In this document: positions 6,001 to 64,000 of the stretch, one piece after another
Numbering within the stretch: position 1 is the first letter of the stretch
Layout of the letters: the number at the start of each line of letters is the position of its first letter
NCBI GenBank assembly: GCA_965112735.1
Contig: OZ218951.1
Span: 992,001-1,056,000 of the forward strand
DNA length: 64,000 nt
Source: Phaeosaccion multiseriatum
Lineage: Eukaryota > Protista > Ochrophyta, other classes
Direction of reading: 5' to 3'
The notes under the pieces: model-generated
What the model saw: the letters and a program-made list of their open reading frames with translations, nothing else
Databases searched by the model: none
Told to the model about the DNA's origin: nothing
Position numbers and translations under genes: made by a program

Positions 6001-9000
6001 TGCGGTGAAAAGAAGAGAGCGCAGGGGGGGGGGGATGGAGGTAGTTCTCTCTGTTGCCCTTTGCACTGCTCTGATCTGACGCGTGTCAAACTTAAAACCG
6101 TTCTGACAGGGTGACTTGGTGCGGCAGCTGGCAGACGGATCGCTGGTGTTTAGGGGTCGCCAAGACTCCCAAGTGAAGGTGCGCGGCTATCGCATTGAGC
6201 TGGGCGAGGTGGAGGCTGCGCTGCTCCATCAAGAGGGGGTGAGGAGCGCTGTGGCCGCCGTGGACAGAGACGGCGAGGCGGTTGTGGCGGCTCTGACACC
6301 TTCAAGTGCCGAAGTTGATATGGTGCTGCAAGGAGTGAGCAAGCTGCTACCGGCATACATGGTGCCGAGCACGGCTGTGGCCATGGATGCTCTACCAATG
6401 ACGAGCAGCGGCAAGCGAGACGTGAAAGGGCTTCTCAGAGCCATTCGAGAGGCACATGACCATGGCCATGGCAGGCAGCGGAGCCTAGGCGTCCGCGATG
6501 ACGCACCTATGGACGACACCACCCGTCAAGTGCTCGGCATTATGCGAGAGGCCATTGGGCGACCGGATCTGCGAGCCAGCGACGACTTGTTCGCCGAGGG
6601 AGGCACTTCGCTTGACGCTGCAAGTGTCACAGCACGCATCCGCGCAGAGGTGCCAGGCTTCGAGGTGAGTGGGATGGAGGGCTGTCTTTCTGGTGTGGCC
6701 GGTAGTTCCAAATGGTTTGCTAATATAGTTGTGGACCGTCGGATATCCTTACTCGTTGCTGTACTCAGGCGCTCCAGGTGGCAGAGATGTTCCAGACACC
6801 CACCGCGAGGGGTGTGTCTCGCTTATGTGCGAGCAGGGAGGACACGCTTCCTGGTATGATGATGATATCGCGAGTTGGCGACCATTGTGAGGCTCCAGCG
6901 TCGTACCAACAGGAGCACATGCTGCTGTCGGACCTGGCGCTGCGAGCGGGCGACCCAGACGGGAGGGCGCGATACAACGTGCCCATGCTTCTACCCGTGC
7001 CCAGCTCCGAATCGGAGAGAGAGCCCAGCGAGGTTGTGGACGGCTTGTCCCGTGCCCTGTGCGCCATGGTGGAGCGTCACGATGTTCTGCGATTGGCGCT
7101 AGGCTGGTCACCGGAGGGGACGCTGCAGCAGGTGCGGCTGCAGACCACAGCAGCGGAGGTTGTGGCGTCAGTGCTTCTGTCCGCCGAGGCGAACAGCATC
7201 GAAGAGGCCGAGAGCGTGCTATTGGCAGAGGCGGGGCGCCTGTTTGACGTGGAGGAGGAAAGGCCACTCTGGCGCAGCACCATCGTCACCGTTGCACCGC
7301 CCCAGGAAGGTGAGAAGGAGCACCCGCTGGGGCGGCAAGCGGTGCTGTGTGTCTTCCACCACTCCATCATGGATGGGTGGTCATCCAAGCTGTTCTCGCG
7401 CGAGCTGTTGGTCCTGTGGGGGGCTGTCGCGTCTGGCCGAGAGGCGACGAAGGCGCTAGCGGCTCTGCCGTTTGGGTATGCGGACTACTCCCTGTGGCAG
7501 CGGTCGCGACTGGACGGGGACAACGGCCTGGCCCTGGAGCAGCTGTTGGAGTACTGGCAGGGGCAGCTAACGGGGGCGTCTACACTGACCCTGCCCCTGG
7601 ACCGACCGCACGGTGCTTTCGGCCCGCATCTGACGGAGACTATAGGTCAAGATGGGATTGTGGGGGGGCGCGGCGGGAGTGTCGCTGTTGTTCTGCCGGC
7701 TTCGCTGATAGTGAAGCTGAGCAACCTATGCTCGGGCAGCTCCGCCACGTTGTTTGTGGGGCTCATGGGCGCGTTCCAAGTGCTGCTGGCTCGTGTGTGC
7801 GGAGCGGAGGATGTGGTGGTGGGCACTGCGCACTTCGGAAGAGACGTGGCGCAAGGCTTGGAGGGCGTGCTGGGATGCTTCGTCAACACCCTCGCGTTCC
7901 GTCTGGGCCTGGGAGGAAGCCCCAGCTTTCGGGAGGTGCTGCTTCGCGTACAAGTCGCGTATCTGGGTGCCATGAAGCATGCCGAGGCACCGTTCCACAA
8001 GGTGGTGGAGCGGGCCCAGCTGGGCAGAAAGAGTGGTGGCAAGGCGCTGCAGGCCTTCTTTTTACTGCAGGAGGGAAATGCCAGCGCCGTGGAGGAGGAG
8101 GCCCAGCTGTCAGCTGGAGCACTCCACAAGATCATGACGGAGGAGGCTGGAGAGCAGCAGGCCAATAATCTTAGCAAGACTGACATCGAGCTATGCCTTG
8201 TGCGCAGCACGGACAGTGCGTCGGACATGCACGGCAGCCTGTGCTACAATATGGCGGTGTTCGACCAGGCCACAGTGGAGACCCTGGCGCGGAGCTTCCT
8301 GGCGCTGCTGGAGAGTGCAGTGGGCAGGCCGGGCGAGAGCGTGTGGAAGCTGAGTCTCTTGGCACACGAGGACCATGTGAAGGTGGTGGAGACGTTGAGC
8401 GGCGCTGCACTGGTGGCGGGGGATGCCAATGGAGATGAGGAGGGAGGTGCAGAGGAAGCATCGCCACCACCGCCCCTCCTGCACGCGGCTTTCGAAGAGA
8501 TGGCCTCTCGTAGTCCGGAGCAGGAAGCCCTGCACGAGTATGAGACGGGTCGAGTCATGAGCTACGGGGAGCTGAATGGGCATGCGAATGCGGTGGCATG
8601 CATGCTGCAGGGGAGAGGCGTGGGGCCGGAGTGCCTGGTGGGGGTGCTGATTGCTGGGGACTGCGTGGAGGCGGTTGTGGCAGTGCTGGGCGTGCTCAAG
8701 GCCGGGGCGGCGTACGTGCCCCTGGATCCCGAGCATCCCGACGATAGGCTATCGATGATCGCACAAGACGCCGGGCTGAGTGTCGTTCTGACGACGGCAA
8801 AGGCAGTAGGCGAGTCTGAGGGGCTGGTAACCGCCGATGCCAGCTTAGCGCGGCGTGTCGGAGACGCGAGCTGTGTGGACGTGGTGGCTGTGATGCAAGT
8901 GGAGAGTACAGCGGAGCCTGTGTGCCACGCCGTGGGCGAGAACATGGCGTACGTGATCTACACATCCGGTAGTACCGGCCGGCCAAAGGGCGTGATGATT

Positions 9001-12000
9001 GAGCACAGAAGCACGGCCAGCTTCATGGCGACTCTCTACGAAGAGGAACTGACGATAACGGCATCTTCTCGTGTGCTCCTGAGTGCTGCTTTGACATTTG
9101 ATGTGTCTGTGGCGTCGCTGTTTGGGCCGTTGTCGTGTGGGGCGACGCTGTGCTTGGCAGAGAAGGGCTCCATGCTGAACGACCTGCCGGAGGTGATACG
9201 GTCTTTGAGGGTAACAGACATGTACTGCACCCCTTCACTGCTGTCGCTGCTTCGACCGGATGACATCACCAATGGAGCTAAGGAGGCCACCTTACGGTCC
9301 ATCGCATTGATTGGGGAGCCGATCAAGGAAGGCCAAGTGGACATGTGGAGGCGCAGTGTTCGCCTTGTCAATAGCTACGGCCCAACAGAGGCGACGGTTT
9401 CCGCTACCGCACATGAGTACAGTCCGGGTGCCCTGTCGAGTGGGTTCGTCATCGGCAAGCCTCGAGCCGGCGTGCAAGTGTATGTGGTGGACAAGCGTCT
9501 GCAGCTGGTGCCTCAGGGCGTGGAGGGCGAGCTGTGCATTGGGGGGAGACAGCTGGCGCGTGGGTACTTGAATCGCCCAGAGCTCACGTCGCAGGCCTTC
9601 ATCCCCGCGCCCTTCCTGACGGATCAGCGCAGAGTGTATCGTACGGTAAGTCGCAAAGGTGGCCCATGGGTGTGCGGCTTTGTGTGTGTGCGTGTGTTGT
9701 GTGTACATTTGGCTTGCTTTTGGCCTGTCATGCGGTGAAAAGAAGAGAGCGCAGGGGGGGGGGGATGGAGGTAGTTCTCTTTGCTGCCCTGTGCACTGTT
9801 CTGATATGACGCATCTCAAACTTAACACGTTCTGACAGGGTGACTTGGTGCGGCAGCTGGCAGACGGATCGCTGGTGTTTAGGGGTCGCCGAGACTCTCA
9901 AGTGAAGGTGCGCGGCCATCGCATTGAGCTGGGCGAGGTGGAGGCTGCGCTGCTCCATCAAGAAGGTGTGAGGAGCGCTGTGGCAGCCGTGGACATTGAG
10001 CGCGAGACGGTTGTGGCGGCTCTGACACCTTCTAGCGCCGAAGTCGAGATGGTGCTGCAAGGAGTGAGCAAGCTGCTACCGGCATACATGGTGCCGAGCA
10101 CGGCTGTGGCCATGGATGCTCTACCGATGACGAGCAGCGGCAAGCGAGACGTGACAGAGGTTCTCAGAGCCATTCGAGAGGCACATGACCATGGCCCTGG
10201 CAGGCAGCGGAGCCTAGGCGTCCGCGATGACGCACCTATGGACGACACCACCCGTCAAGTGCTCGGCATTATGCGAGAGGCCATTGGGCGACCGGATCTG
10301 CGAGCCAGCGGCGACTTGTTCGCCGAGGGAGGCACTTCGCTTGACGCTGCAAGTGTCACAGCACGCATCCGCGCAGAGGTGCCAGGCTTCGAGGTGAGTG
10401 GGATGGAGGGCTGTCTTTCTGGTGTGGCCGGTAGTTCCAAATGGTTTGCTAATATAGTTGTGGACCGTCGGATATCCTTACTCGTTGCTGTACTCAGGCG
10501 CTCCAGGTGGCAGAGATGTTCCAGACACCCACCGCGAGGGGTGTGTCTCGCTTATGTGCGAGCAGGGAGGACACGCTTCCTGGTATGATGATGATATCGC
10601 GAGTTGGCGACCATCGTGAGGCTCCAGCGTCGTACCAACAGGAGCACATGCTGCTGTCGGACCTGGCGCTGCGAGCGGGCGACCCAGACGGGAGGGCGCG
10701 ATACAACGTGCCCATGCTGCTACCCGTGTCCAGCTCCGAATCGGAGAGAGAGCCCAGCGAGGTTGTGGACGGCTTGTCCCGTGCCCTGTGTGCCATGGTG
10801 GAGCGTCACGATGTTCTGCGATTGGCGCTAGGCTGGTCACCGGAGGGGACGCTGCAGCCGGTGCGGCTGCAGACCACAGCAGCGGAGGTTGTGGCGTCAG
10901 TGCTCCTGTCCGCCGAGGCGAACAGCATCAAAGAGGCCGAGAGCGTGCTATTGGCAGAGGCGGGGCGCCTGTTTGACTTGGAGGAGGAAAGGCCACTCTG
11001 GCGCAGCACCATCGTCACCGTTGCACCGCCCCAGGATGATGAGAAGGAGCACCCGCTGGGGCGGCAAGCGGTGCTGTGTGTCTTCCACCACTCCATCATG
11101 GATGGGTGGTCATCCAAGCTGTTCTCGCGCGAGCTGTTGGTCATGTGGGGGGCTGTCGTGTCTGGCCGAGAGGCGACGAAGGCGCTAGCGGCTCTGCCGT
11201 TTGGGTATGCGGACTACTCGCGGTGGCAACGGTCGCGACTGGACGGGGACAACGGCCTGGCCCTGGAGCAGCTGTTGGAGTACTGGCAGGGGCAGCTAAC
11301 GGGGGCGTCTTCACTGACCCTGCCCCTGGACCGACCGCACGGTGCTTTCGGCCCGCATCTGACGGAGACTGTAAGTCAAGATGGGATTGTGGGGGGGGGC
11401 GGCGGGAGTGTTGCTGTTGTTCTGCCGGCTTCGCTGATAGTGAAGCTGAGCAACCTATGCTCGAGCAGCTCCGTCACGCTGTTTGTGGGGCTCATGGGCG
11501 CGTTCCAAGTGCTGCTGGCTCGTGTGTGCGGAGCGGAGGATGTGGTGGTGGGCACTGCGCACTTCGGAAGAGACGTGGCGCAAGGCTTGGAGGGCGTGCT
11601 GGGATGCTTCGTCAACACCCTCGCGTTCCGTCTGGGCCTGGGAGGAAGCCCCAGCTTTCGGGAGGTGCTGCTTCGCGTACAAGTCGCGTATCTGGGTGCC
11701 ATGAAGCATGCCGAGGCACCGTTCCACAAGGTGGTGGAGCGGGCCCAGCTGGGCAGAAAGAGTGGTGGTAAGGCGCTACAAGCCTTCTTTGTACTGCAGG
11801 AGGGAAATGCCAGCGCCGTGGAGGAGGAGGCCCAGCTGTCAGCTGGAGCACTCCACAAGATCATGACGGAGGAGGCTGGAGAGCAGCAGGCCAATAATCT
11901 TAGCAAGACTGACATCCAGCTAAGCCTTGTGCGCCGCAGCACGGACAGTGCGTCGGACATGCACGGCAGCCTGTGCTACAATACGGCGGTGCTCGACCAG

Positions 12001-30952: not shown

Positions 30953-33435
30953 TTAGGCCGATCGGCTCAGCTCCTCCTGCTGGTAGGAGCCCATTGCGCC
31001 GACCGACGACGAGGAGGAGGGCATGCCTGCGCTACCGATGCTCTCTCCCCGCGTGGGCTGCTCCTCCGGCGGGGCGATGCCCATGGCGTCTGCGATGCCC
31101 CTGATGACAAAGGTCATATCAAGCTCGGTGTCAAGTTTGTTGACGGCAGAGCCCACACCCACTCCGCTTGCTCCTGCCGCCAAGGCCATGGGGGCGGTGA
31201 CGTCACACAACCCTGTGTGTGTGTGTGCATGTGTGTGTGTGAGAGAGAGAGAGAGAGAGTGAGTGCGTGTGTGTGTGAGGGGGGCAGTGAGTGACAAGGA
31301 CAGGCCTGAAGCTGTGTGGTACGAAGTAACGAGGGCCAAGGGCTAAGCAAAGCCCTCAGGAGAGCATCAGGTACATTCATCCCAAAGCATGGAGCGCTAC
31401 CCCGCCCACCCCCCCTCGTTAAGTGACATAGACGCACACACACACACGCAATCTGAGACGCCCAATCTAAGAAACCCAATCGCTCTCACCTGAGGCAGCC
31501 ATGACTGGGATGTTGACGGCACGGGAGATGGCGTACGCTGCGGCCAGTGTGGGGGCAGCCTTCTCAATCGCGCCCTGAACACCGCCCCTGATCAGACAAA
31601 GAGGCAAGACAAAGAAAGAGAAGAGAAGACAACGTAAGAAAGAGAAGAGGGATAAGCCAAGACAGTTAAGCCCAGAGAGAAGAGGGATAAGCCAAGACAG
31701 CTAAGCCCAGAGAGGACACAAGAAGAGCGCTGGGTCGCTTGGTCTGTTCACTGACATATGCATAGTGTGCCTACTCCCTAACTAATGTGTAGTGTGCCTG
31801 CTCACGGACTGTGTGTACTGTGTCTGCTCACTGACTTACATGCTGGGGTTGATGCTGACCTTGCCCTCGGTCTGAATGAGGTCGGCTCCGAGCGCCTCCA
31901 GCCGCACAGCCAAATCCACCTGCATGCAGGAGAGTTGAGGGAGAGGGGGGGCGAGACATGGAGATCAGGGAGAGAGAGAGAGAGAGAGAGCAAGGAGAAG
32001 GAGAGAAGAGAGAGCATGGATAATGTCAATGAATGAGGGAGTGAAGGAAGAAAGAGAACAAGGGATCTGACTGAAGTACACAAAGCGTGCGACGCTATGC
32101 AGCACGGCTGCTGGGGTGACCCACTTCTCGCTTCACTCGACCACTACTCACGACTGGCTCTGATTGACTGATTGACTGACTGACTGACTGGCTGGCTGTT
32201 CCTTCTCTCTCCTCCCTTCCTCCCCTTTCTTCCCTCCCTCCCTGCCTCCCTCCCCACCCTCCTTCCCTTCCCCACTCCCTCCCTCCCCCACCTGATCGGA
32301 GATGCACAGCGTGTGTGGGACGGTGACCGAGAGGGGGATGTCGGGCAGCAGCTCTCTTGTGTGCATGGTCATGTCAATCACGTCCTGGGCAGTGAAGGTG
32401 AGGCCCTGCTCGTAGAACGGGTCGAAGTTGCCCAGCTCGATCATCTTGAGGGGGATGGGGAAGGGGGTGGATACGATGCGGGTACCAAGACCAGCCATAC
32501 AAACACACAGAGCGAGAGAGAGAGGGACAGGAGAGATAGAGAGAGGAGAGTCCAAGGGGGGGGGGGGGAGGAAGGGGAGAGGGGAGGGCAAAGGCAAGGG
32601 AGAGAGGTGGAGAAACGCTTCCGTAAGCTGTGCTGCCCACTCAGCCACCAAGTGGAGAAGAATGACATGAGCGATGGATGGGCCTTGAATGGAGCAGCGA
32701 GTTATTGGCCATTGATTGATTGATCAGATAGTGGTGCATGTTTTGTCGTCAAAAGGCGGACGCATGACCCTGCCCATCCGCAATGCTTTTCAGCACCGCA
32801 GCACGGGAGGCGCAGAACCATTACGAACAGGTCTATGATAAATATGGGTTTTTATCCTCATCTCAATCAGGGGAAAAGAAGCACAACGTACACGAAGACA
32901 TACACATCCATCCATCGCAGTACCCACACCCACACCCACATGCCTCACCTCGGCTCCCTCCTGCACGCACAGAGGGAAGAGCGCAGGGTTGATGGCGCTG
33001 ACGCAGACGGGCACGTCGCTGACTGCCTTGGCTGCGCGCACGAGGGCGGGATCTGCGGCAATGTCGATGCAGGATGCGCCTCCAAAGGCGGAGGCCTTTG
33101 CCACGTTCTCCACGAGCTTCTGGTCGAAGTTCTGCAGCCCGGAGATGACCTGTGTTGTGGGTGTGATGATGATAATTATAATCATGGTGATGAAACATGA
33201 GCATGGTAAGGAAGCAAGGAAGGGAAGGAAGTAGAGGAGAGTAAGGAAGGAAGGAGAGGGAGGGGAAAGCGAAGGAAGGACAGCATGGTCTGTACTGCGG
33301 CCGAGCCACGACACTAACCTTCAGGGCCCGCCCCTCCTTGAAAGGCGTGAGCACGTTGTTCATGCTCATCTGTGGCACAAAGGCCGTCGCGAGGCCAGCG
33401 GTGGCCAGAGCCAGGCACATACTAAGAGATGACAT
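30953..33435 (-). CDS. ycf23: Ycf23/DUF561 TIM-barrel protein, nucleus-encoded and plastid-targeted, 6 exons
   Basis: Presequence MSSLSMCLALATAGLATA-FVP. Spliced motifs: ALK|VISGLQNFD, IDIAADP, PVCVSA, MIELGNFDPFY, LSVTVPHTL, GADLIQTEG, IEKAAPTLAAAYAISRAV, ASG|LCDVTAPMALAAGASGVGVGSAVNKL. Confidence 0.92.
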
Positions 33436-35312: not shown

Positions 35313-36035
35313 TTAGGACTTGTCCTTGTGCAGCGGCGACAAGTCCTCTTCCGCCTTGCCATTGCCGAGCCTCTCCACCGCCCGTCGCAGTGTGCTAATT
35401 TTCTCTGCCCTATCCCCCTTGAACACGTACGAGCCTGCCACGATCAAATTCGCCCCGGCCTCTGCTGCCTGATCGATGCTATCGGCATTGAGCCCCCCGT
35501 CTACTTCGATGGCGAGGCCTGGGAACTTTTCCCGGATAGCCTTGACCTTGCTCATTTGGTCTTGCATGAAGCTCTGTCCCCCAAAGCCGGGTTCTACTGT
35601 CATAATGAGGGCGAGGTCGAGCTGGTCGCAGTACTGCAACAGGCCCTCCACAGGGGTGGCTGGCTTGATGGCCATGCCCACCTTCATGCCACTGCCCTTG
35701 ATGGCATTGATCACCTCACTCGGCTCGCAGTCCGACTCCAAATGGAAGGTCAGTCTATCCACACCTGCTTTGGCCATATCCTCCACCCACTGCTGCGGTT
35801 TGGTGACCATGAGGTGAGCATCCAGCACTGCTTTGGTGTGTTGTCTCAGCCCCTTGATGACAGGCGCGCCGAAGGAGATGTTTGGCACAAAGTGTCCGTC
35901 CATCACATCAAGGTGAATGTAGTCAGCGCCAGAGGCCTCCACGTGCGCCACTTCCTCCGCAAGGCGGGAGAGGTCGGACGCCAGCACGGAGGGGCCGATT
36001 TCAGGCGGGCAGCTGTGGGGCGATGTGGACGCCAT
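35313..36035 (-). CDS. RPE: Ribulose-phosphate 3-epimerase, intronless (an upstream in-frame ATG at 36,197 is also possible)
   Basis: IGPSVLASD, YIHLDVMDGHFVPNISFG, LDAHLMV, TFHLE, IKPATP, LIMTVEPGFGGQSFM, IEVDGG, AGANLIVAGS. Confidence 0.97.
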   Translation of the reverse strand: MASTSPHSCPPEIGPSVLASDLSRLAEEVAHVEASGADYIHLDVMDGHFVPNISFGAPVIKGLRQHTKAVLDAHLMVTKPQQWVEDMAKAGVDRLTFHLESDCEPSEVINAIKGSGMKVGMAIKPATPVEGLLQYCDQLDLALIMTVEPGFGGQSFMQDQMSKVKAIREKFPGLAIEVDGGLNADSIDQAAEAGANLIVAGSYVFKGDRAEKISTLRRAVERLGNGKAEEDLSPLHKDKS

Positions 36036-36858
36036 GTTCTCCCTTGTCTTCGACGCTGGGAAGTGAGTGTACGACGGTGAGGATGCGGGGCTGGAAGAGG
36101 AGCAGCAGCTAGCTGCAGCAGCTGCAGCAGCACCGGCAAGGCTGTGAGAGGCAGGAGGGCACGTAATTTTTTTTTGTTGATTATTGGCAGGAGGCATGAA
36201 TGTCTAGTCCCAACCCATTTTCTACCATTTACGCAAGGGGAGACAGGCAAGAACTTACCAGCAGCAGCTAACAAAGGTCTTGAGGAGCCGAATATCCAGG
36301 CTTACTTCTTACTCTTTGCTGTGAAGGGAGAATGAGGCGCGATAAGGTCGTCGGGAAGTCGGGGTGCGGGGAAGGGGGAGCGTAATGCCGCAACGGAAAC
36401 CTCTGGATGGCACCTGATGGCCCAAACTAGTTTGGCGTCCATTTTATTTTTTTAAAGTGCCCCTCTCTTGCCTCTTGTCTGTTCCCTACCGCACCCTTAC
36501 TCAGGATGGGTCGTGCATGACCCTCCTCTCTCTCTGTCCTCGTCGTGGTAGGCCTTTGCATTCCATCGGGACGGACACGACATTATCTAAAGTCTCCCTC
36601 TCGCGACAACTGCCAAGTCGCCTTGACGGTGACATTGCGCGACATTGCCGCTCCCTCACATAGCAACATGTGCTGAGTGTCCAGAACGGGCCCTAATCCG
36701 TTTATACTCCTCGCGCTGGGAAGGAAGGAGGCTTGGGCCCGGAGGAAGAATAAGCGCGAGATTGGACCGATTCACCGAGGACTCTGCGCTTCACGCTGTA
36801 ACGTAGCCTTCAGCGTCTCCCGCCGGCTTGCGTTCTTTCTCCCACCTCGGGGGATACC

Positions 36859-55965: not shown

Positions 55966-56406
55966 GCCGCTGTTGCTGTTGCTGCTGCTGCTGCTGCTGC
56001 TACTGCTATTGCTGCGGCTGCTGCACCAGGGGTACCCGCAGTTGATGCTGGTAGCCCGACTGAGGAGTGCGGCAGGAGACGCAGGGACAACGTGAGGGCA
56101 ATCAGGCGATCCGGGTGGCGGTAAACAGTGTCGGACAGCTGCTGCGGGGGTTGCCCCTGCTGCTGCTGAGGGGGGCACTGCTGCTGCTGAGGCAGCCCCC
56201 TGTGGCTGCCGACTGCTATCGTTGCTGCGGTACTGCGGCTGCCATCTGCTCCGGTGACCACTCTTTCTGAAAAGGGGCTGCACTGCGGTTGCCCACTGCT
56301 GAGGCGACCACTGTTGATGTTGAGGTAGAGGAACCGGCTGCAGAGGCTGATGGGGATAATGGGGTCCTGGAAGCTGAGCCTGCGGGTGATTCTGCTGCGG
56401 CTGATG

Positions 56407-56443
<37 letters not shown>

Positions 56444-57072
56444 GGCACCAGGGGTGGGGGCTGCTGATGTTGCGGTGGAGGATGTTGCTGAGACTGATGC
56501 TGTTGCTGCTGCTGCTGCTGCTGAGACTGTGCAGGCGGCTGGTAGCGTGCCTGCTGAGCACGTCCTCTCGGCGGTGAAGTATTACGCTGCATCCGCTAAG
56601 GAGGAGGAGCGGATTGCCGGTTGACCATCGCTTGCATTATGTCCCCGTCAGGAAATCGAGGCGGTCCAACAGTTCCTCTATATCAGGAGCCATCGCCGCC
56701 CGTATCGCGCGAAGGCTCTCACGTTGCTCCAGCGTCGCCTGCCGCCCTGGTCGAAAGGAAATAGTGCGTGGGAGCCGAAAGCTGTCCCCAGACCCTACTC
56801 TTCCATCCAGGAACCGTGTGCCCTCCGCTGTGAGAGCGTTCGTGGGGCTGTGTTGCCCTGCCACAACCACCACCATTACCAGCATTACTGTGTGTATTGT
56901 CTGCGGCGAAATAACCGAACGTGCTGTCGCCCTCCACTGCAGAAGCCACCCCCTCCGACTGCTGCACCACTCCCTCCGATGAAGTGGTCTCGGGGCCCAA
57001 CAGTTCCTCGGTCAGTTCGTCCACTCCTCTGTCCTCTTCGCCAGATTCCGGCGGAGCTGAGGCGTCCGCCAT
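55700..57072 (-). pseudogene. Frameshifted Gln/Ser/Pro-rich ORF remnant with (CAG)n tracts, possibly a transposon ORF1/gag relic
   Basis: MADASAPPESGEEDRGVDELTEELL..., LEQRESLRAIRAAMAPDIEELLDRLD and a poly-Q segment lie in different frames with stops and no obvious introns. Confidence 0.3.
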
Positions 57073-57269
57073 CCCTCCCCCCTTGACGCGGAACGCGGGA
57101 GACGAACGCCGAGCATTGAAAAGAATCGAAAGAGGGAGAGTGAGTGAGTGAGGGGAGGGGGGGGAGGGATCGAGGGAGGGAGGAAAAAGGAAAAAGGAAA
57201 AAGTAAAAAAAAAAGGAAAAGCCTTGGTCACCAGGTTTTGATCTTTAGAAGACGTGAAGATTACGATGA

Positions 57270-57298
57270 ATATAACGAGAAGCAGGGCCAACGCCCAA
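57270..57298 (+). promoter_or_regulatory. Candidate upstream Pol III promoter (TATA-like box plus CAA motifs) of the permuted tRNA
   Basis: ATATAA at 57,270-57,275, and CAA at 57,289 and 57,296, just 5' of the tRNA leader. Confidence 0.4.
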
Positions 57299-57307
57299 TG
57301 TCTAATC

Positions 57308-57403
57308 AACATGACGTCGGCAGTTCAATTCTGTCCAGAAGCTGGAATCTTGATGGCCTCCATCATAGCTTCTGTAACTCAGTGGTAGAGTGCGTGTTTA
57401 GTA
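57308..57403 (+). tRNA. trnT(AGU): Circularly permuted tRNA-Thr(AGU): 3' half at 57,308-57,343, 24-nt spacer, 5' half at 57,368-57,403, junction at tRNA position 37/38
   Basis: The rejoined halves give a 72-nt cloverleaf: acceptor GCTTCTG/CAGAAGC plus T73, D stem ACTC/GAGT with loop AGTGGTA, anticodon stem CGTGT/ACATG with loop TT-AGT-AA, variable loop ACGTC, T stem GGCAG/CTGTC with loop TTCAATT. Confidence 0.88.
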
Positions 57404-57418
57404 GCATTCCACATCTCA

Positions 57419-57425
57419 TTTTTTT
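57419..57425 (+). terminator. Pol III oligo-T terminator
   Basis: T7 run beginning 15 nt after the end of the tRNA 5' half. Confidence 0.7.
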
Positions 57426-57900
57426 CCTCGTTCCTTTGTGAGTGCTGCGCTGGTCGTTCTCCCCTCGCCATCGAGCACTCTCATTCTATTTTTTTCTTTT
57501 TTCCTCGTTCCTTTACAGTTGTATGTTTGCTCCGCTGGTTTTGCTCACCCCCTGTGTGCTCCCGCGTTGTGCTCTCACCCCCCTGGCATTCTCGCCCCCC
57601 AACACTCTCGTTTGATCTTCCGGGGCAGTGGTCACATTTAGTACAGTTACGAGTATGTGGGGGAGGCCGAAATGAGGGCGAAGGGAGAGGAAAATTGAAA
57701 ATTAGACCTTTTTGGTGACAGCAAGATTGTGATGAGTAATGACATCCCCACAGCCTCGCCTGAGCAGGACTAGTGTAACTTGAAGGGTGTAGAGAGTGTA
57801 TGTATCTCTGTGTCTCTTGGAGGGGGGGAGTGCTCGGAGGGTTGCTTGTCCAGCTAGTAGGACATCACAAGAGCACGAACGCTCGGAGGCGTTGTGTCCC

Positions 57901-58070
57901 GTCAAGAGGAGATGGCAGTGAATGGGCAGAGTGTCGGCTCAAGAGGGGATGGCAGTGGATGGGCTGTGACCGCTCAAGGAAGAGGGGATGGCAGTGGATG
58001 GGATGGGTCGGCACAAGAGGAGAAAGCACTGGATGGGTTGGGCTGGCTCAAGAGGGGATGGCAGTGGAGG
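57901..58070. repeat. Degenerate minisatellite of about 37 bp containing CAAGAGGGGATGGCAGTGRATGG
   Basis: Core copies at 57,911, 57,948, 57,987 and 58,057, plus one degenerate copy. Confidence 0.8.
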
Positions 58071-58544
58071 CGACACAATAACAAGAGAAGCAGCAGCAGC
58101 AGCAGAGAGCAGCGAGACAAAGTCAGGAGACGCTTACGTCATTCGCGCCTGCCTCTCTCTCTTTCTCTTTCGTTAGACCACTTAAGTAAACACCCGGCTT
58201 GACAACAGCTTGACACAGTCCAATGCAGTTACGGGCGGTCCAGGGAGAGACCCTCTCCTGCCCTGCCATTATATTGATTAATCAATTATTCAATCGTAAA
58301 TGTGTATAACCGATGAGAGGTTTCCTCTAGTACTACCCCCTCCCTCCCTCACCCTCCCCACCTCACTCCCCCCCTCCCTCCTTCACTTGCTCACTCAATA
58401 TATAGCTCCACTCGACTCCTCTGCCCCCCCCTTCTCCACTATAGACCCACACGTATCCTACCCTACCACCCTCACAGCCTATACCATGAAACACGCAGCA
58501 GCTCCTGCCCTTGTGTCATATCAAAATGACAAAACGGCTCTCAT

Positions 58545-61500
58545 CTACTGAAAGAAAACCCAAGCCGAAACCACAGCTTGCAAAAACACAAAGGCCGCGC
58601 TAAGGCTGGCCAGCTCCACAAACGTCTTCTTCTCCGCCACGGCCAGGTCGAACTCTCGAATCAGGTTCGACACGCCCGCCGCGCTGGTGGTGGAACCAAT
58701 CTTCTCATCATCCTCATGCCAATCCTCATCATCATCGTCGTACTCGCCGCTCTCAGCCTTCTCCCGCAAGCCGCTAAGCTCGGCCTTGACCAGACCGTCA
58801 ATTTGGGCCTTGCGCGCCAGAGCACGCTCCAGTGACCCCGACAGAGAGGTCATGCGCTTGCTCCGAAGGAAGGCCTTCTCTGTCTCCGCCTGAACCCGCT
58901 TGGTCAGGGCCTCTACCGCGACGCCTGCACCCTCCTCGGTTGGACTTCGTGGCACCACTACCACCTCTTCCTTCTTCTCCTCCTCCTTCTCCTTCACCTT
59001 CACCTCCTTCTCCTTTGACTCCACCTCCTCCTTTTCTAACCCCTTCTCCTCCTCTACTGACTCAACCTCTTTCGCCCCATTGACGCTCCCCGAGCTTGCC
59101 TCTGTAACAGTTGGAGCCGCTGCCTGCGGGGAAGGGGGTGACACCTCCTCCCTCACCGGTGGTGGCTTCGTCACTCCTCCACCAAAGGCCGAATAGTTTT
59201 TACGCTGCGGCTCTTGCGCCTGTGCCCCTCCCCCAACCGCAGAGACAGCACCTCCACCGCTTGCTTGCCCTGCCTCGAGGCTCTTCCGGTACTCCGCGTA
59301 ACTCATTGCAGCTCCCGAGGCCTCTGGTGCCGCTTGTCTCACAGGGGGTGGTTGCGGCTCTCTGACAGACGGTGTCGAGCTGCCGCTGCGATAGGCCCCA
59401 ACGCCATAGCTCTTAACGGGAGCGGTGGGTGCAGCAGCTGCTGGCGCCGCTGGAGGCGATGATGATGCTGCGATTCCTCCTGAGCTGCCGCGGTCTGCTC
59501 CGTATGGGCTGTAGCTCGTCACAGGAGCAGTGGGTGCAGCTGGCGGTGGCACTGGCGCTGCTGGAGCCGATGATGAGGCTCCCATTCCTCCCGGGCTGCC
59601 GCTGCGGTACGCCCCGCGGCCAAAGCTCTTGACTGGGGCACTGGGAGCAGCTGGGGGTGGCATTGGCGCTGCTGGAGGCGATGATGATGCTGCGATTCCT
59701 CCTGAGCTGCCGCGGTCTGCTCCGTATGGGCTGTAGCTCGTCACAGGAGCAGTGGGTGCAGCTGGCGGTGGCACTGGCGCTGCTGGAGCCGATGATGAGG
59801 CTCCCATTCCTCCCGGGCTGCCGCTGCGGTACGCCCCGCGGCCAAAGCTCTTGACTGGGGCACTGGGAGCAGTTGGGGGTGGCATTGACGCTGCTGGAGG
59901 CGATGATGATGCTGCGATTCCTCCTGAGCTGCCGCGGTCTGCTCCGTATGGGCTGTAGCTCGTCACAGGAGCAGTGGGTGCAGCTGGCGGTGGCACTGGC
60001 GCTGCTGGAGCCGATGATGAGGCTCCCATTCCTCCCGGGCTGCCGCTGCGGTACGCCCCGCGGCCAAAGCTCTTGACTGGGGCACTGGGAGCAGCTGGGG
60101 GTGGCATTGGCGCTGCTGGAGGCGACGAGGCTGTCGCAGCTCCGCCTGAGCTGCTGCGGTTTGCTCCGAAAGGGCTGTAGCTCGTCGTGGGGGCACTGGG
60201 TGGAGCTCGGGGTGGCAATGGCGCTGCTGGAGGCGATGATGCAGCCACCGCTCCGCCTGAGCCGCTGCGATGGTCGCCGAAGCGGGCGTACGACTTTGTC
60301 GGGGGTGATGAGACGTCTCTCAACGGCTCTGACGCTAGTGGGAGGAAGGGAGGAAGAGAGAGAGAGGGGGAGGGAGGGAGGGAGGGAGGGAGGGAGGGAG
60401 GGAGGGAGAGGGGGAAGGAGGGAGAGAGGGAAGGAGGGATGGGGAGAGAGAAGGGGAGGAGGGAATGAGGAGGGAGGGAGGGAGGGAGGGAGGGAGGGAG
60501 GGAGGGAGGGAGGGAGGGAGGGAGGGGGGAGGGAAGGAAGGAGGGGGGGGAGGGGAGAGGGAAGGAGGGAGGGAGGGAGGGAGGGAAGAAGGGGGAGGGG
60601 CGGGGGGAAAGAGAGTGAGACGAGTCAGTCGGGCTGTCCAAGAAACACTACACACACACACACACGCACACACACAAATACCTGGCGCGGGCGCTGCAGG
60701 TTGCGACGATGCTGCCACTGCAGGGCTGTCGCTGCGGTAGGCCCCGCGCCCAAAGCTTTTTGTCCCTCCTTCTGCGCTGGGAGGAGGAGTGCTCGTCAAG
60801 GGGGCAGCGGGTGGTGGCAATGGCGCTACTGGAGCCGATGATGAGGCGGCTGCCACACCTCCTGAGCTGCCGCTGCGGTAGGCCCCAACGCCATAGCTCT
60901 TAACGGGATCACTGGGTGCGGCAGCTGCAGGTGCCGCTGGAGTCGATGATGGTGCTGCTATTCCTCCTGAGCTGCTGCGGTTTGCTCCGTATGGGCTGTA
61001 GCTCGTCGTGGGGGCACTGGGTGGAGCTCGGGGTGGCAATGGCGCTGCTGGAGGCGATGATGCAGCCGCCGCTCCGCCTGAGCCGCTGCGGTAGTCCCCA
61101 AAGCGGGAGTAACTCTTCTTAGGCTCTGGGGACCATAATGGCGCCACATTTGGCGCCTCTTCTCTCACAGGTGCTGGCTGTGTGTCTCCTTCCCTACTGC
61201 GGTAATCTGCGTACGGTGAGTAGCTCGTCACAGGGGCCTTCGGTGCAGCTGCTGATGGTTCCCTCACAGACGGTGTCGAGCTGCTGCTGCTGCTGCTGCT
61301 GCTACTACTACTCCGATAGTCTCCGAAGCGGGCGTACGACTTGGGAGGGGGTGGTGAGACGTCTCTCAACGGCTCTGATGCTGGTGGGAAGGAGGGGAGG
61401 GAGAGGGAGGGAGAGAGAGAGGGAGGGAGGCGAGGGGAGGGAGAGTGGGAGGGAGGGAGAGTTAGGAGGGATGAAGAGTGGAAGGAAGGGAGGCGAGGGA

Positions 61501-61598
61501 GGGATGGAGAGAGGCATGGAGACAGTGAGACAAGTCAGTCGGGCTGTCCAAAGAAAAAAACAGGAACACACAAAACCACACACAGAGACACACACCCT

Positions 61599-61632
<34 letters not shown>

Positions 61633-62584
61633 CTATACCTGGTGCTGCAGGTTGCGACCATGCTGCCGAACCTTGCGACCCGCTGCGGTAGGCCCCGCGT
61701 CCATAGCTTTTTGTCTCTCCTCCTGCACTGGGAGGGGGAGTGCCTGTCAAGAGGACAGGGGCTGATGGTGCTGGTGCTGAAGGAGGCGATGAGGCCGCTG
61801 CTCCTCCTGGGCTGCTGCGGTAACTGTCGAATGCTGAGAAGCTCCGGCCCTTTGCTGACGACTGGGCTGGAGGTGCTGGTACCTGGTTCACTGGTGACGA
61901 TGCCGTGAGCCCCGCTGGCGTCGGAGAAGGCGAATGCGATACAGGTGCCTGCCTTGGTGTTGCCCCGCCGAAGGGGGAGTAGCTCCTGGCCGCTGCCGGT
62001 GGCTGTGGGGCTGTTGGTGACCCTCGCATAGGCTCTGACACTGACGGCAATGGCGCTGTTACTGGAGGCGATGAGGCTGCTTCCACTCGTCCTGAGCTTC
62101 TGTAGTCTCCGAAAGGGCTGTAGCTCGTCACGGGAGCAGTGGGTGCAGCTGGCGGCGGCATTGGCGCTGCTGGAGGGGATGATGAGGCTCCCATTCCTCC
62201 CGGGCTGCCGCTGCGGTACGCCCCGCGGCCAAAGCTCTTGACCGGGGCACTGGGCGCAGCTGGTGGCGTCTGTCCTGCTCCTTGCTGGGCCTGGTAGCTG
62301 CTGTCCGTGTTGCTCTGATGATTGGGGAAAGGGTGATGACGTGGGGAGGACGAGAGGTGGGGTGTGGTTGGGGAGAGGAGAGAGTGTGAGTGAAGCGGGC
62401 CGGGGGGAGTGGCAAGGCAAGGAAGACGCACACAAAGCGCTCGAACCGCGGCAGTCTTGAAAACACTTTCCAAAAATCGAGGAGGATGTACGCTCACGAA
62501 CACACACAACACAAGATAAACAAACGCACTCGGCATTCCATTCCCATCTGCTTCTTGCCGCTCTGGACACCAGACAAGCCACAG

Positions 62585-62624
<40 letters not shown>

Positions 62625-63217
62625 ACACACACACACACACACTCACTCACACACACAATCGCACACACTCACTCACACACACAATCGCACACACTCACTT
62701 ACACACACAACAAAAAATGAGGATAAAACGTTCGATATATTATAGTCAAGAGAGAAAAGGAGGAGGTCGGTAGGTGCGCAGAGGCTCAACAGCGAAGTCT
62801 CTCCCTCCTCCAACCTCATCCATCCACTGCCATCCATCCATCTCAGCGACTGCCGTCCCCACTAACCTTTTGCTGCTGCTGCGCGGCGTAAAGGGCCGCT
62901 CCCTCAACACCGAAGCTTCCTCCTGTGCTGCTTGCGCCGCTGCCGCTGTCGCGGTTTGCTCCGTAAGGTGAGTAGCTCGTCATGGGCGCACTGGGAGGAG
63001 CTGGTGGTGCTTCTCTCCCAGACGGTGGTGCTGAAGCCACTCCTCCAGGAGGGCTGCTGCTGTTGCTCCCGCTGCGGTAGGCCCCGCGGCCGAAGCTCTT
63101 CACCTCTCCTGTGCTGCTTGCGTCGCTGCCGCCTATTACGCTGACTCCAACCGGAGTGAAGCTCACAGGCACTTGCGCTGACCCTTCCGGCGGCACGGGT
63201 ACTGACCGTGAGATGGA

Positions 63218-63255
<38 letters not shown>

Positions 63256-64000
63256 GGTAGGCGCCGAAGCGATCATACGTCCTTGCTCCTCCTCCTGAGC
63301 TCTCTGTCCTCTCTCCTGCGCTGCTTGGGGAGCCTCCGATGGCAGCAGAAGCGCTGCTCACAGGGGCAGTGTAGACTGATGGCGCTGGTGCGGCTGGGGC
63401 TGATGCCGATGCTGTGCGTGACGCCATGTACGCTGCAAAGCCCGTCAATGGGGCACTTTCTGCAGCTGCTGATGCCTCCCTAACAGGAGGTGTTGAGCCG
63501 CTGCTGCTGCTGCTGCCGCTGCTACTACTACTACTGCTGGTGCTGGTGCGATAGTCTCCGTAGCGGGCGTACGACTTTGCCCCTCCTCCTGTGCTGTGTT
63601 GGTAAGCTGCGATGGGAGGAGGAGGCGACGCTGATGCCACTACTCCAGGAGGGCTGCTGCTGCGGCTCTCGCTGCGGTATGCCCCGCGGCCGAAGCTCTT
63701 CGCCTCTCCTGTGCTCGGCGTTGGTTGCTGTGTGACACTTGCTGTCCGACGGCGGAGCTCTTCAAACGACCCTCTCCCTCCTCCTCCCCCTGCCACAGCA
63801 CCTCCACCGCTTGCTTGAGCTGCCTCGAGGCTCTTCCGGTACTCCGCGTAACTCATTGCAGCTCCCGAGGGCTCTGGTGCCGCTTGTCTCACAGGGGGTG
63901 GCGGCGGCGTCGTCAGTCCTCCTTGTTCGCTACCACGATAGTCTTGAAATCGGGAGAAACTCCTTCCTGACCCTTCCACTGGATGGGCCGCTGGTGCCGG
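58545..64000 (-). CDS. Repetitive intrinsically disordered Ser/Ala/Pro/Gly protein with aromatic-Arg motifs, a C-terminal coiled coil and a hydrophobic tail; 5' end lies beyond the window. Introns 62315-62866, 61381-61638, 60335-60681
   Basis: Four long ORFs are joined in frame by GT-AG introns (K|SNTD, P-A|SEPLRDVS twice). Recurring motifs are KSFGRGAYRS, TSYSPYG, KSYARFGDYRS and MSYAEYRKSL. Confidence 0.8.
59446..60126. repeat. Coding tandem repeat, 222 bp (74 aa) x3, near-perfect
   Basis: Near-identical shadow ORFs start at 59,530, 59,752 and 59,974 (offset 222). Confidence 0.95.

Follow-up and report, generated by a model that had tools for sequence, protein, structure and literature searches.

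Order of the tRNA halves and the rejoined cloverleaf

Two halves of a tRNA gene lie in swapped order on the + strand of the 64-kb window (the whole stretch of DNA that was analysed), separated by 24 nt. The 3′ half, corresponding to nt 38-73 of the tRNA, occupies positions 57308-57343 and precedes the 5′ half, nt 1-37, at positions 57368-57403. The 3′ half is composed of the 3′ strand of the anticodon stem, a 5-nt variable loop, the T arm GGCAG/TTCAATT/CTGTC, the acceptor strand CAGAAGC and the discriminator T, and the B box GGCAGTTCAATTC sits in its T arm. The CCA end is absent from the gene, which is the eukaryotic type, T73 being followed by GGA. The 5′ half consists of the acceptor strand GCTTCTG, the D arm, the 5′ strand of the anticodon stem and the loop TTAGTA with the anticodon AGT, and its D arm carries the A-box-like sequence TAACTCAGTGG with A10. 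The spacer between the halves (57344-57367, + strand, 24 nt, sequence GGAATCTTGATGGCCTCCATCATA) closes the acceptor stem. A 6-bp hairpin, TGATGG/CCATCA, is predicted inside the spacer by RNAfold at 57351-57365, in agreement with the first-pass annotation of this DNA, which had described both the spacer length and the hairpin.

When the halves were rejoined, the 5′ half followed by the 3′ half, ARAGORN called the resulting 72 nt as tRNA-Thr(agt), the identity that had been proposed; this call is the basis on which both halves were assigned. The acceptor stem is Watson-Crick throughout (7/7 pairs), and the other three stems, D, anticodon and T, are intact. The claim that a 3′ half stands upstream of a 5′ half, with four stems pairing across them, was thus confirmed, and the halves are perfectly complementary, with 12 stem pairs formed between them. 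By inspection, the rejoined tRNA has the consensus residues U8, A14, G15:C48, G18G19, A21, G26:A44, U33, A37, G46, G53-C61, T54T55C56 and A58, together with the pairs G1-C72 and C2-G71; its sole oddity is A10-U25, which replaces the usual G10-C25. We take G1-C72, C2-G71, G35 and U36 to agree with the threonine identity elements. A34 in a threonine anticodon is of the eukaryotic nuclear type and is normally edited to inosine; its presence argues against an organelle-derived fragment.

No defect was found in either half at conserved positions or in pairing. This speaks against a reading that we consider unlikely, namely that a tandem pair of intron-containing Thr(AGT) genes lost its outer halves and left the locus behind as a silent relic, with Thr(AGU) being supplied by conventional genes elsewhere. 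Loss from such a tandem is the published origin model, and the pairing between leader and trailer described below would then come free from the ancestral intron (PMC3978253). The flanks, however, are without decayed outer halves: a search for them by local alignment found only an 18-nt T-rich repeat.

As had been anticipated, standard tRNA finders miss the gene. ARAGORN detected 0 tRNAs in the unrearranged 64-kb window, and Rfam gave no match at gathering score in the window and none, not even a half-match, at E ≤ 10 over 57200-57500. For a scan for permuted genes, the window was cut into 150-nt segments, each of which was doubled, so that a type II permuted gene appears "intron-containing", and ARAGORN was then run. 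Junction-spanning tRNAs were found in seven overlapping segments covering this locus and nowhere else in the 64 kb, with both strands included. Each half is present once in the window, even with 3 mismatches allowed, which upholds the earlier statement that neither has a second copy nearby; with no second half in 64 kb at this threshold, a tandem array of intron-containing tRNA genes was not observed. Nowhere else in the window does a B-box-like pattern lie within tRNA range of a D-arm pattern; each pattern has one other match, and these two matches are isolated and 1.6 kb apart. A split (trans-spliced) arrangement of the Nanoarchaeum type was not found either: the halves are 24 nt apart, and there is no promoter or terminator between them, the spacer containing no T run and no TATA.

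Candidate splice motif and putative transcription signals in the flanks

In the canonical motif at a 37/38 junction, nt 32-35 pair with the four nucleotides before the last two intron nucleotides, these last two form a 3-nt bulge together with nt 38, and an outer helix is present. At the permuted locus, the 3′ part of the intron-equivalent is the leader (57297-57307, + strand), which was analysed by manual pairing, energy evaluation and a random-flank test, and the 5′ part is the trailer (57404-57418, + strand), in which (G)CATT at 57404-57408 pairs with the leader. The leader comprises (i) AATG(T), one strand of the outer helix h′, (ii) CTAA (57302-57305), one strand of the central helix H, and (iii) TC, which bulges with A38. 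Helix H consists of 4 Watson-Crick bp, in which T32, T33, A34 and G35 pair with A57305, A57304, T57303 and C57302, respectively. T57306, C57307 and A38 make up a 3-nt 3′ bulge, so that the motif includes the anticodon-intron pair, formed by nt 32 and position -3. The outer helix h′ has 4-5 bp, C57405-T57408 of the trailer pairing with G57300-A57297 of the leader and G57404-T57301 being an optional wobble. The 5′ bulge is 2 nt long if G57404-T57301 pairs and 3 nt otherwise, so the motif is relaxed and not strict. Green-algal and nucleomorph permuted genes likewise have "relaxed" hBH motifs (PMC3978253).

The pairing behind the BHB-like motif that had been proposed at 37/38 was verified, with the caveat that it is not the minimum-energy fold in RNAfold. 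Among random leader/trailer pairs drawn from the window, the fraction satisfying the motif rule was 1e-5 with Watson-Crick pairs only and 9e-4 with G-U pairs allowed. With the four tRNA stems enforced, RNAfold gave the four Watson-Crick h′ pairs a probability of 0.57-0.98 and the H-helix pairs one of only ~0.06; it favoured pairing of the leader CTA with T36, A37 and G57404, at -32.7 kcal/mol versus -30.7 kcal/mol for the BHB conformer. According to these models, a BHB-like motif is available and close in energy, though it is not predicted to be the dominant fold.

A TATA-like element, AATATAA (57269-57275, + strand), is a putative upstream Pol III promoter, a role suggested by comparison with the tRNA genes of C. 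merolae and of plants (PMC3978253). The element stands ~26 nt before a CAA triplet at 57296-57298 (+ strand) and 37 nt before the 3′ half, and TATAA is rare in the 64-kb window (59.5% GC), with 6 occurrences on the + strand. Plant tRNA genes carry CAA start motifs, and from such general knowledge the triplet at 57296-57298 is a putative transcription start; another CAA triplet lies at 57289-91. A start near 57297 would give an ~11-nt leader, just long enough for h′, H and the two bulge nucleotides. Downstream, a T7 run (57419-57425, + strand), located 15 nt after the 5′ half, is a putative Pol III terminator. The T-rich trailer is locally duplicated: the 18 nt TTTTTTCCTCGTTCCTTT at 57420-57437 recur exactly, in direct orientation, at 57497-57514, so that the terminator region is repeated 77 nt downstream. 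This duplication includes further T7 and T6 runs (57489-57502, + strand), which are possible back-up terminators. The TATA-like box, CAA and T7 run listed in the first-pass annotation are thus all in place. When upstream and downstream signals were scored jointly, as TATAA 25-45 nt upstream and T≥5 within 30 nt downstream of a 96-nt unit, the combination occurred at 3e-4 of window positions, every one of which represents this locus.

Since the 3′ half comes first, its B box stands ahead of the A-box-like sequence of the 5′ half, an order that deprives TFIIIC of its usual geometry; the argument has also been made for known permuted tRNA genes (PMC3978253). That a rare TATAA and a T7 run are placed exactly as a transcription unit needs them weighs against a silent relic. 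So does the position of the T7 run 15 nt into the trailer, which is incompatible with a working intron, so that the flanks are not simply an old intron.

The terminator ~45 nt downstream of the A-box-like sequence makes a short transcript conceivable. The locus might then produce tRNA-half-like small RNAs, or a stable 5′-half transcript begun in the spacer from the A box, and not a decoding tRNA. We regard such a role as very improbable: it would leave the 12 cross-half stem pairs and the splice-site geometry without purpose, and the A box deviates at G10. To our knowledge, there is no precedent for a non-decoding role of such a locus.

Read-derived contigs, host lineage and searches for relatives

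Logan contigs of three runs (X1, X3 and X6) of one sample, S1, were compared with positions 56300-58400, the simple-repeat stretch 56387-56533 being skipped; the sample may be the one behind the assembly, in which case the runs are not fully independent of it. In each run, one contig extends from 57274/57277 onward with 0 differences through both halves, the spacer and the terminators, reaching past 58400 in X1 and X3 and covering 57274-57562 in X6. The depth at the locus equals that of the unique flanks (88.9 vs 104.9, 517.7 vs 532 and 52 vs 51.1 in the three runs), which indicates that nothing is collapsed, and in X1, X3 and X6 alike the depth of the bin 57365-57435, which contains the 5′ half, is exactly that of the one contig that spans the locus.

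A second 5′-half copy at ≥90% likeness, sought with pieces down to 24 nt, was found in none of the three runs, a result that also disfavours a silent relic, although divergent isodecoders would escape this threshold. The joint 57403→57308, the mark of a conventional intron-less copy or of the mature RNA, was not reported in the runs, which look like DNA. Contigs built from 31-letter words presumably break at repeated words. Those of the three runs are unbroken through both 36-nt halves, which argues that neither half is identically repeated in the genome.

Judged by these contigs, the arrangement is real in the genome and is not an assembly error or a collapsed tandem. A collapsed or truncated tandem had been named in the first-pass annotation as a finding that would overturn the reading, and it is not seen in the read-derived contigs of the three runs. 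We consider it extremely unlikely that ordinary tRNA genes in tandem were mis-joined or collapsed during assembly. What speaks for such an artefact is a contig break with a 30-nt overlap at 57274-57303 in all three S1 runs, just upstream of the 3′ half. Separately built contigs of the three runs nevertheless cross both halves and the spacer without a difference and at single-copy depth, and the upstream contig, which starts at 56548 (X3), 57144 (X1) or 57206 (X6) and ends at 57303 in each run, reaches the leader with no 5′ half in it.

The contig break at 57274-57303, which falls between the TATA-like element and the leader, points to branching of the 31-mer graph; a variant at 57273 or 57304 could be the cause, as could a second locus sharing the 30-mer. 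Extra depth in the bin 57294-57364 was considered as a sign of a second 3′-half copy, an explanation that was rejected, the size of the excess being inconsistent between runs of the same sample.

A further run, X5, from a second sample and study with the same organism label, covers 56548-57150, differing there by a single SNP (C>G at 56795), and contains nothing of 57223-57932. Absence of the locus from the X5 contigs would suit a silent relic, but the hole proves nothing. The depths of this run are uneven (28.9 to 188.8), and it may therefore be RNA-derived; alternatively, the locus may be polymorphic.

The description of the host as an ochrophyte-like alga was borne out by a ribulose-phosphate 3-epimerase ORF (35313-36197, - strand). 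Its best matches, with 61-69% identity, are from brown algae, Chrysoparadoxa and raphidophytes, followed by oomycetes. In a maximum-likelihood tree, the epimerase falls in a clade with Chrysoparadoxa and Phaeophyceae (support 100/99), outside the brown algae, and the raphidophytes are next out. An ochrophyte host is supported by this single-gene tree.

Several other genes were recognized in the window. A DUF561 gene (32148-33314, - strand), presumably Ycf23-like, is split over at least 2 exons and fits a plastid-bearing organism; a sulfotransferase gene is also present. Six tandem ORFs of ~720-1010 aa occupy 86-20595 (+ strand), and the one that was scanned (6778-9738) has Condensation and AMP-binding domains; by its sequence, the array resembles a multi-module non-ribosomal peptide synthetase, here in a eukaryotic setting with introns. 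The protein encoded by long ORFs at 58545-63979 (- strand) is rich in Ser/Pro/Ala/Gly and highly repetitive: the DNA contains 111-nt repeats, and motifs such as SYSPYGADR and KSFGRGAYRSGS recur in the protein, for which no Pfam match was found. A search for contigs that encode the two ORFs flanking the tRNA gene found none on record.

Metagenomes were scanned for the permuted layout with a pattern consisting of a T loop, 20-50 nt, and then the D arm TAACTCAGTGGTAGAG, with no Thr anticodon arm in the pattern. No relative of the permuted Thr gene was found among the 120 loci retrieved. Conventional tRNA genes around the match explain 114 of them (two genes in 103 loci, one in 11), and the matches are mostly bacterial and phage tandem tRNA genes. 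Viral contigs scanned with the cores of the 5′ and 3′ halves gave 0 matches.

One of the metagenome loci (L094, 2020-2140 on the + strand of contig Ga0129324_10032048, GC 41%) has an anticodon arm (TGT), a T arm, the 3′ strand of an acceptor stem and GCCA, followed after 6 nt by the acceptor 5′ strand and a D arm. When rejoined, it is called tRNA-Thr(tgt) by ARAGORN, and 9 nt of leader/trailer complementarity flank it. From its sequence, the locus looks like a permuted tRNA gene with a junction near 26/27 and an encoded CCA; the contig also carries conventional tRNA-Ser, His and Thr(tgt) genes and is therefore phage- or bacterium-like. At five other loci (L005, L013, L062, L079 and L114), a T arm and acceptor strand are closely followed by an acceptor strand and D arm, and no conventional tRNA is called there; ARAGORN found no tmRNA in any of the five. 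L062 has a G3-U70 acceptor pair and an encoded CCA.

Proposed maturation and comparison with known permuted tRNA genes

The analyses establish the DNA-level anatomy of the locus, that is, its layout, cloverleaf, capacity for the splice motif, flanking signals and single-copy status in read-derived contigs. The order of the halves is that of a type II permuted gene, and it is accompanied by a canonical cloverleaf, BHB-capable flanks, upstream and downstream signals and the lack of an encoded CCA. The locus is most likely a known kind of gene in a new lineage, a permuted tRNA gene in an ochrophyte. We consider it probable that it is a working type II (37/38) circularly permuted nuclear tRNA-Thr(AGU) gene whose transcript matures as in C. 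merolae, the RNA steps being proposed by analogy with this alga and with green-algal precedents.

Following this analogy, the upstream TATA-like element would direct Pol III to a start site near the CAA at 57296-98, the internal boxes being in the wrong order for normal use. Transcription would stop at the T7 run (57419-57425), giving a ~125-nt linear precursor composed of the leader, the 3′ half, the 24-nt spacer, the 5′ half and the trailer. The precursor would fold as a cloverleaf, with the spacer closing the acceptor stem and with the leader and trailer pairing beside the anticodon stem to form the BHB-like motif. The tRNA splicing endonuclease would then cut after A37 (57403|57404) and before A38 (57307|57308), and tRNA ligase would join A37 to A38, producing a 96-nt circle. 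RNase P and tRNase Z would excise the spacer at G1 and U73, as in the C. merolae pathway (PMC3978253), after which CCA would be added. Finally, deamination would convert A34 to inosine, the usual fate of this base in eukaryotic Thr(AGU).

The published catalogue of permuted tRNA genes contains 34 entries: 11 from C. merolae, 19 from Ostreococcus and Micromonas, two from the Bigelowiella nucleomorph and two from Thermofilum pendens (PMC3978253). The list of lineages in the first-pass annotation omits later additions, namely further chlorarachniophyte nucleomorphs (PMC4494063) and Auxenochlorella (PMC12633428). A 2026 review of photosynthetic eukaryotes places permuted tRNAs in red algae, green algae and nucleomorphs only (PMC13578239). 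In the full-text literature searched, which included diatoms, brown algae, Nannochloropsis and pelagophytes, we found no report of a permuted tRNA gene in a stramenopile, consistent with the earlier remark that none was known from this lineage.

The patchy distribution of permuted tRNA genes figures centrally in the question of whether such genes are relics of great age or were invented recently and more than once. If the gene described here is a working one, a copy in the host nucleus of a stramenopile would add a lineage outside Archaeplastida. It would also favour repeated origin where Pol III transcription from upstream promoters and 37/38 splicing coexist, the alternative being transfer from a red-algal endosymbiont. 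Standard annotation pipelines miss permuted genes, and ochrophyte genomes may therefore be wrongly scored as lacking a Thr(AGU) decoder. Specialists in tRNA biology and in algal genomics would find the locus of interest, and it matters in practice for annotation.

The closest counterpart in layout is the permuted Thr(AGT) gene of C. merolae, with which the ochrophyte gene shares the isoacceptor, the 37/38 junction and a 24-bp intervening sequence (Soma et al. 2007; PMC3978253). The two are also alike in having no intron, a TATA-like element upstream, a T stretch downstream and no encoded CCA (PMC3978253). These shared features (isoacceptor, junction and intervening length) are what suggests that the gene might descend from a permuted Thr(AGU) gene of the red-algal endosymbiont, acquired through endosymbiotic gene transfer, and that the host might now depend on it alone for an essential tRNA. 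Were this true, a nuclear tRNA gene would have been carried into the ochrophyte nucleus together with its circular maturation route. We judge this descent to be a long shot and treat the match (Thr(AGT), type II, 24 bp) as coincidence, the likeness being one of layout. C. merolae is a red alga and not a stramenopile, and besides type II it has junctions of types I, III and IV, as well as ectopic introns (PMC3978253). Expression and a circular intermediate have been demonstrated experimentally for its Thr(AGT) gene (PMC3978253).

The type II genes of Ostreococcus, Micromonas and chlorarachniophyte nucleomorphs also have the 37/38 junction, AT-rich upstream regions, short spacers of 5-64 bp and a relaxed hBH motif that is within reach of the ordinary eukaryotic endonuclease (Maruyama et al. 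2010, as summarised in PMC3978253; PMC4494063). They differ in belonging to the green lineage or being green-derived, and in specificity: they are mostly Ser, Leu, Cys, iMet, Arg or Asn genes, with no Thr gene among those listed (PMC3978253; PMC4494063). In Auxenochlorella, a trebouxiophyte green alga, the halves are also reversed, and the genes came to light through an incomplete tRNAscan-SE set (PMC12633428). Thermofilum pendens has circular permutation and a BHB-type junction in common with the ochrophyte gene (PMC3218864). It differs in being an archaeon, with a 59/60 junction, encoded CCA, spacers of 1-7 nt, and introns as well (PMC3218864).

Ordinary eukaryotic tRNA genes with a 37/38 intron resemble the permuted gene in the anticodon-intron pair at nt 32 and the 3-nt 3′ bulge, and presumably in the use of the same endonuclease and ligase. 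Unlike theirs, the "intron" of the permuted gene is open-ended, consisting of leader and trailer, so that ligation makes a circle, and the acceptor ends must consequently be made by cutting out the internal spacer.
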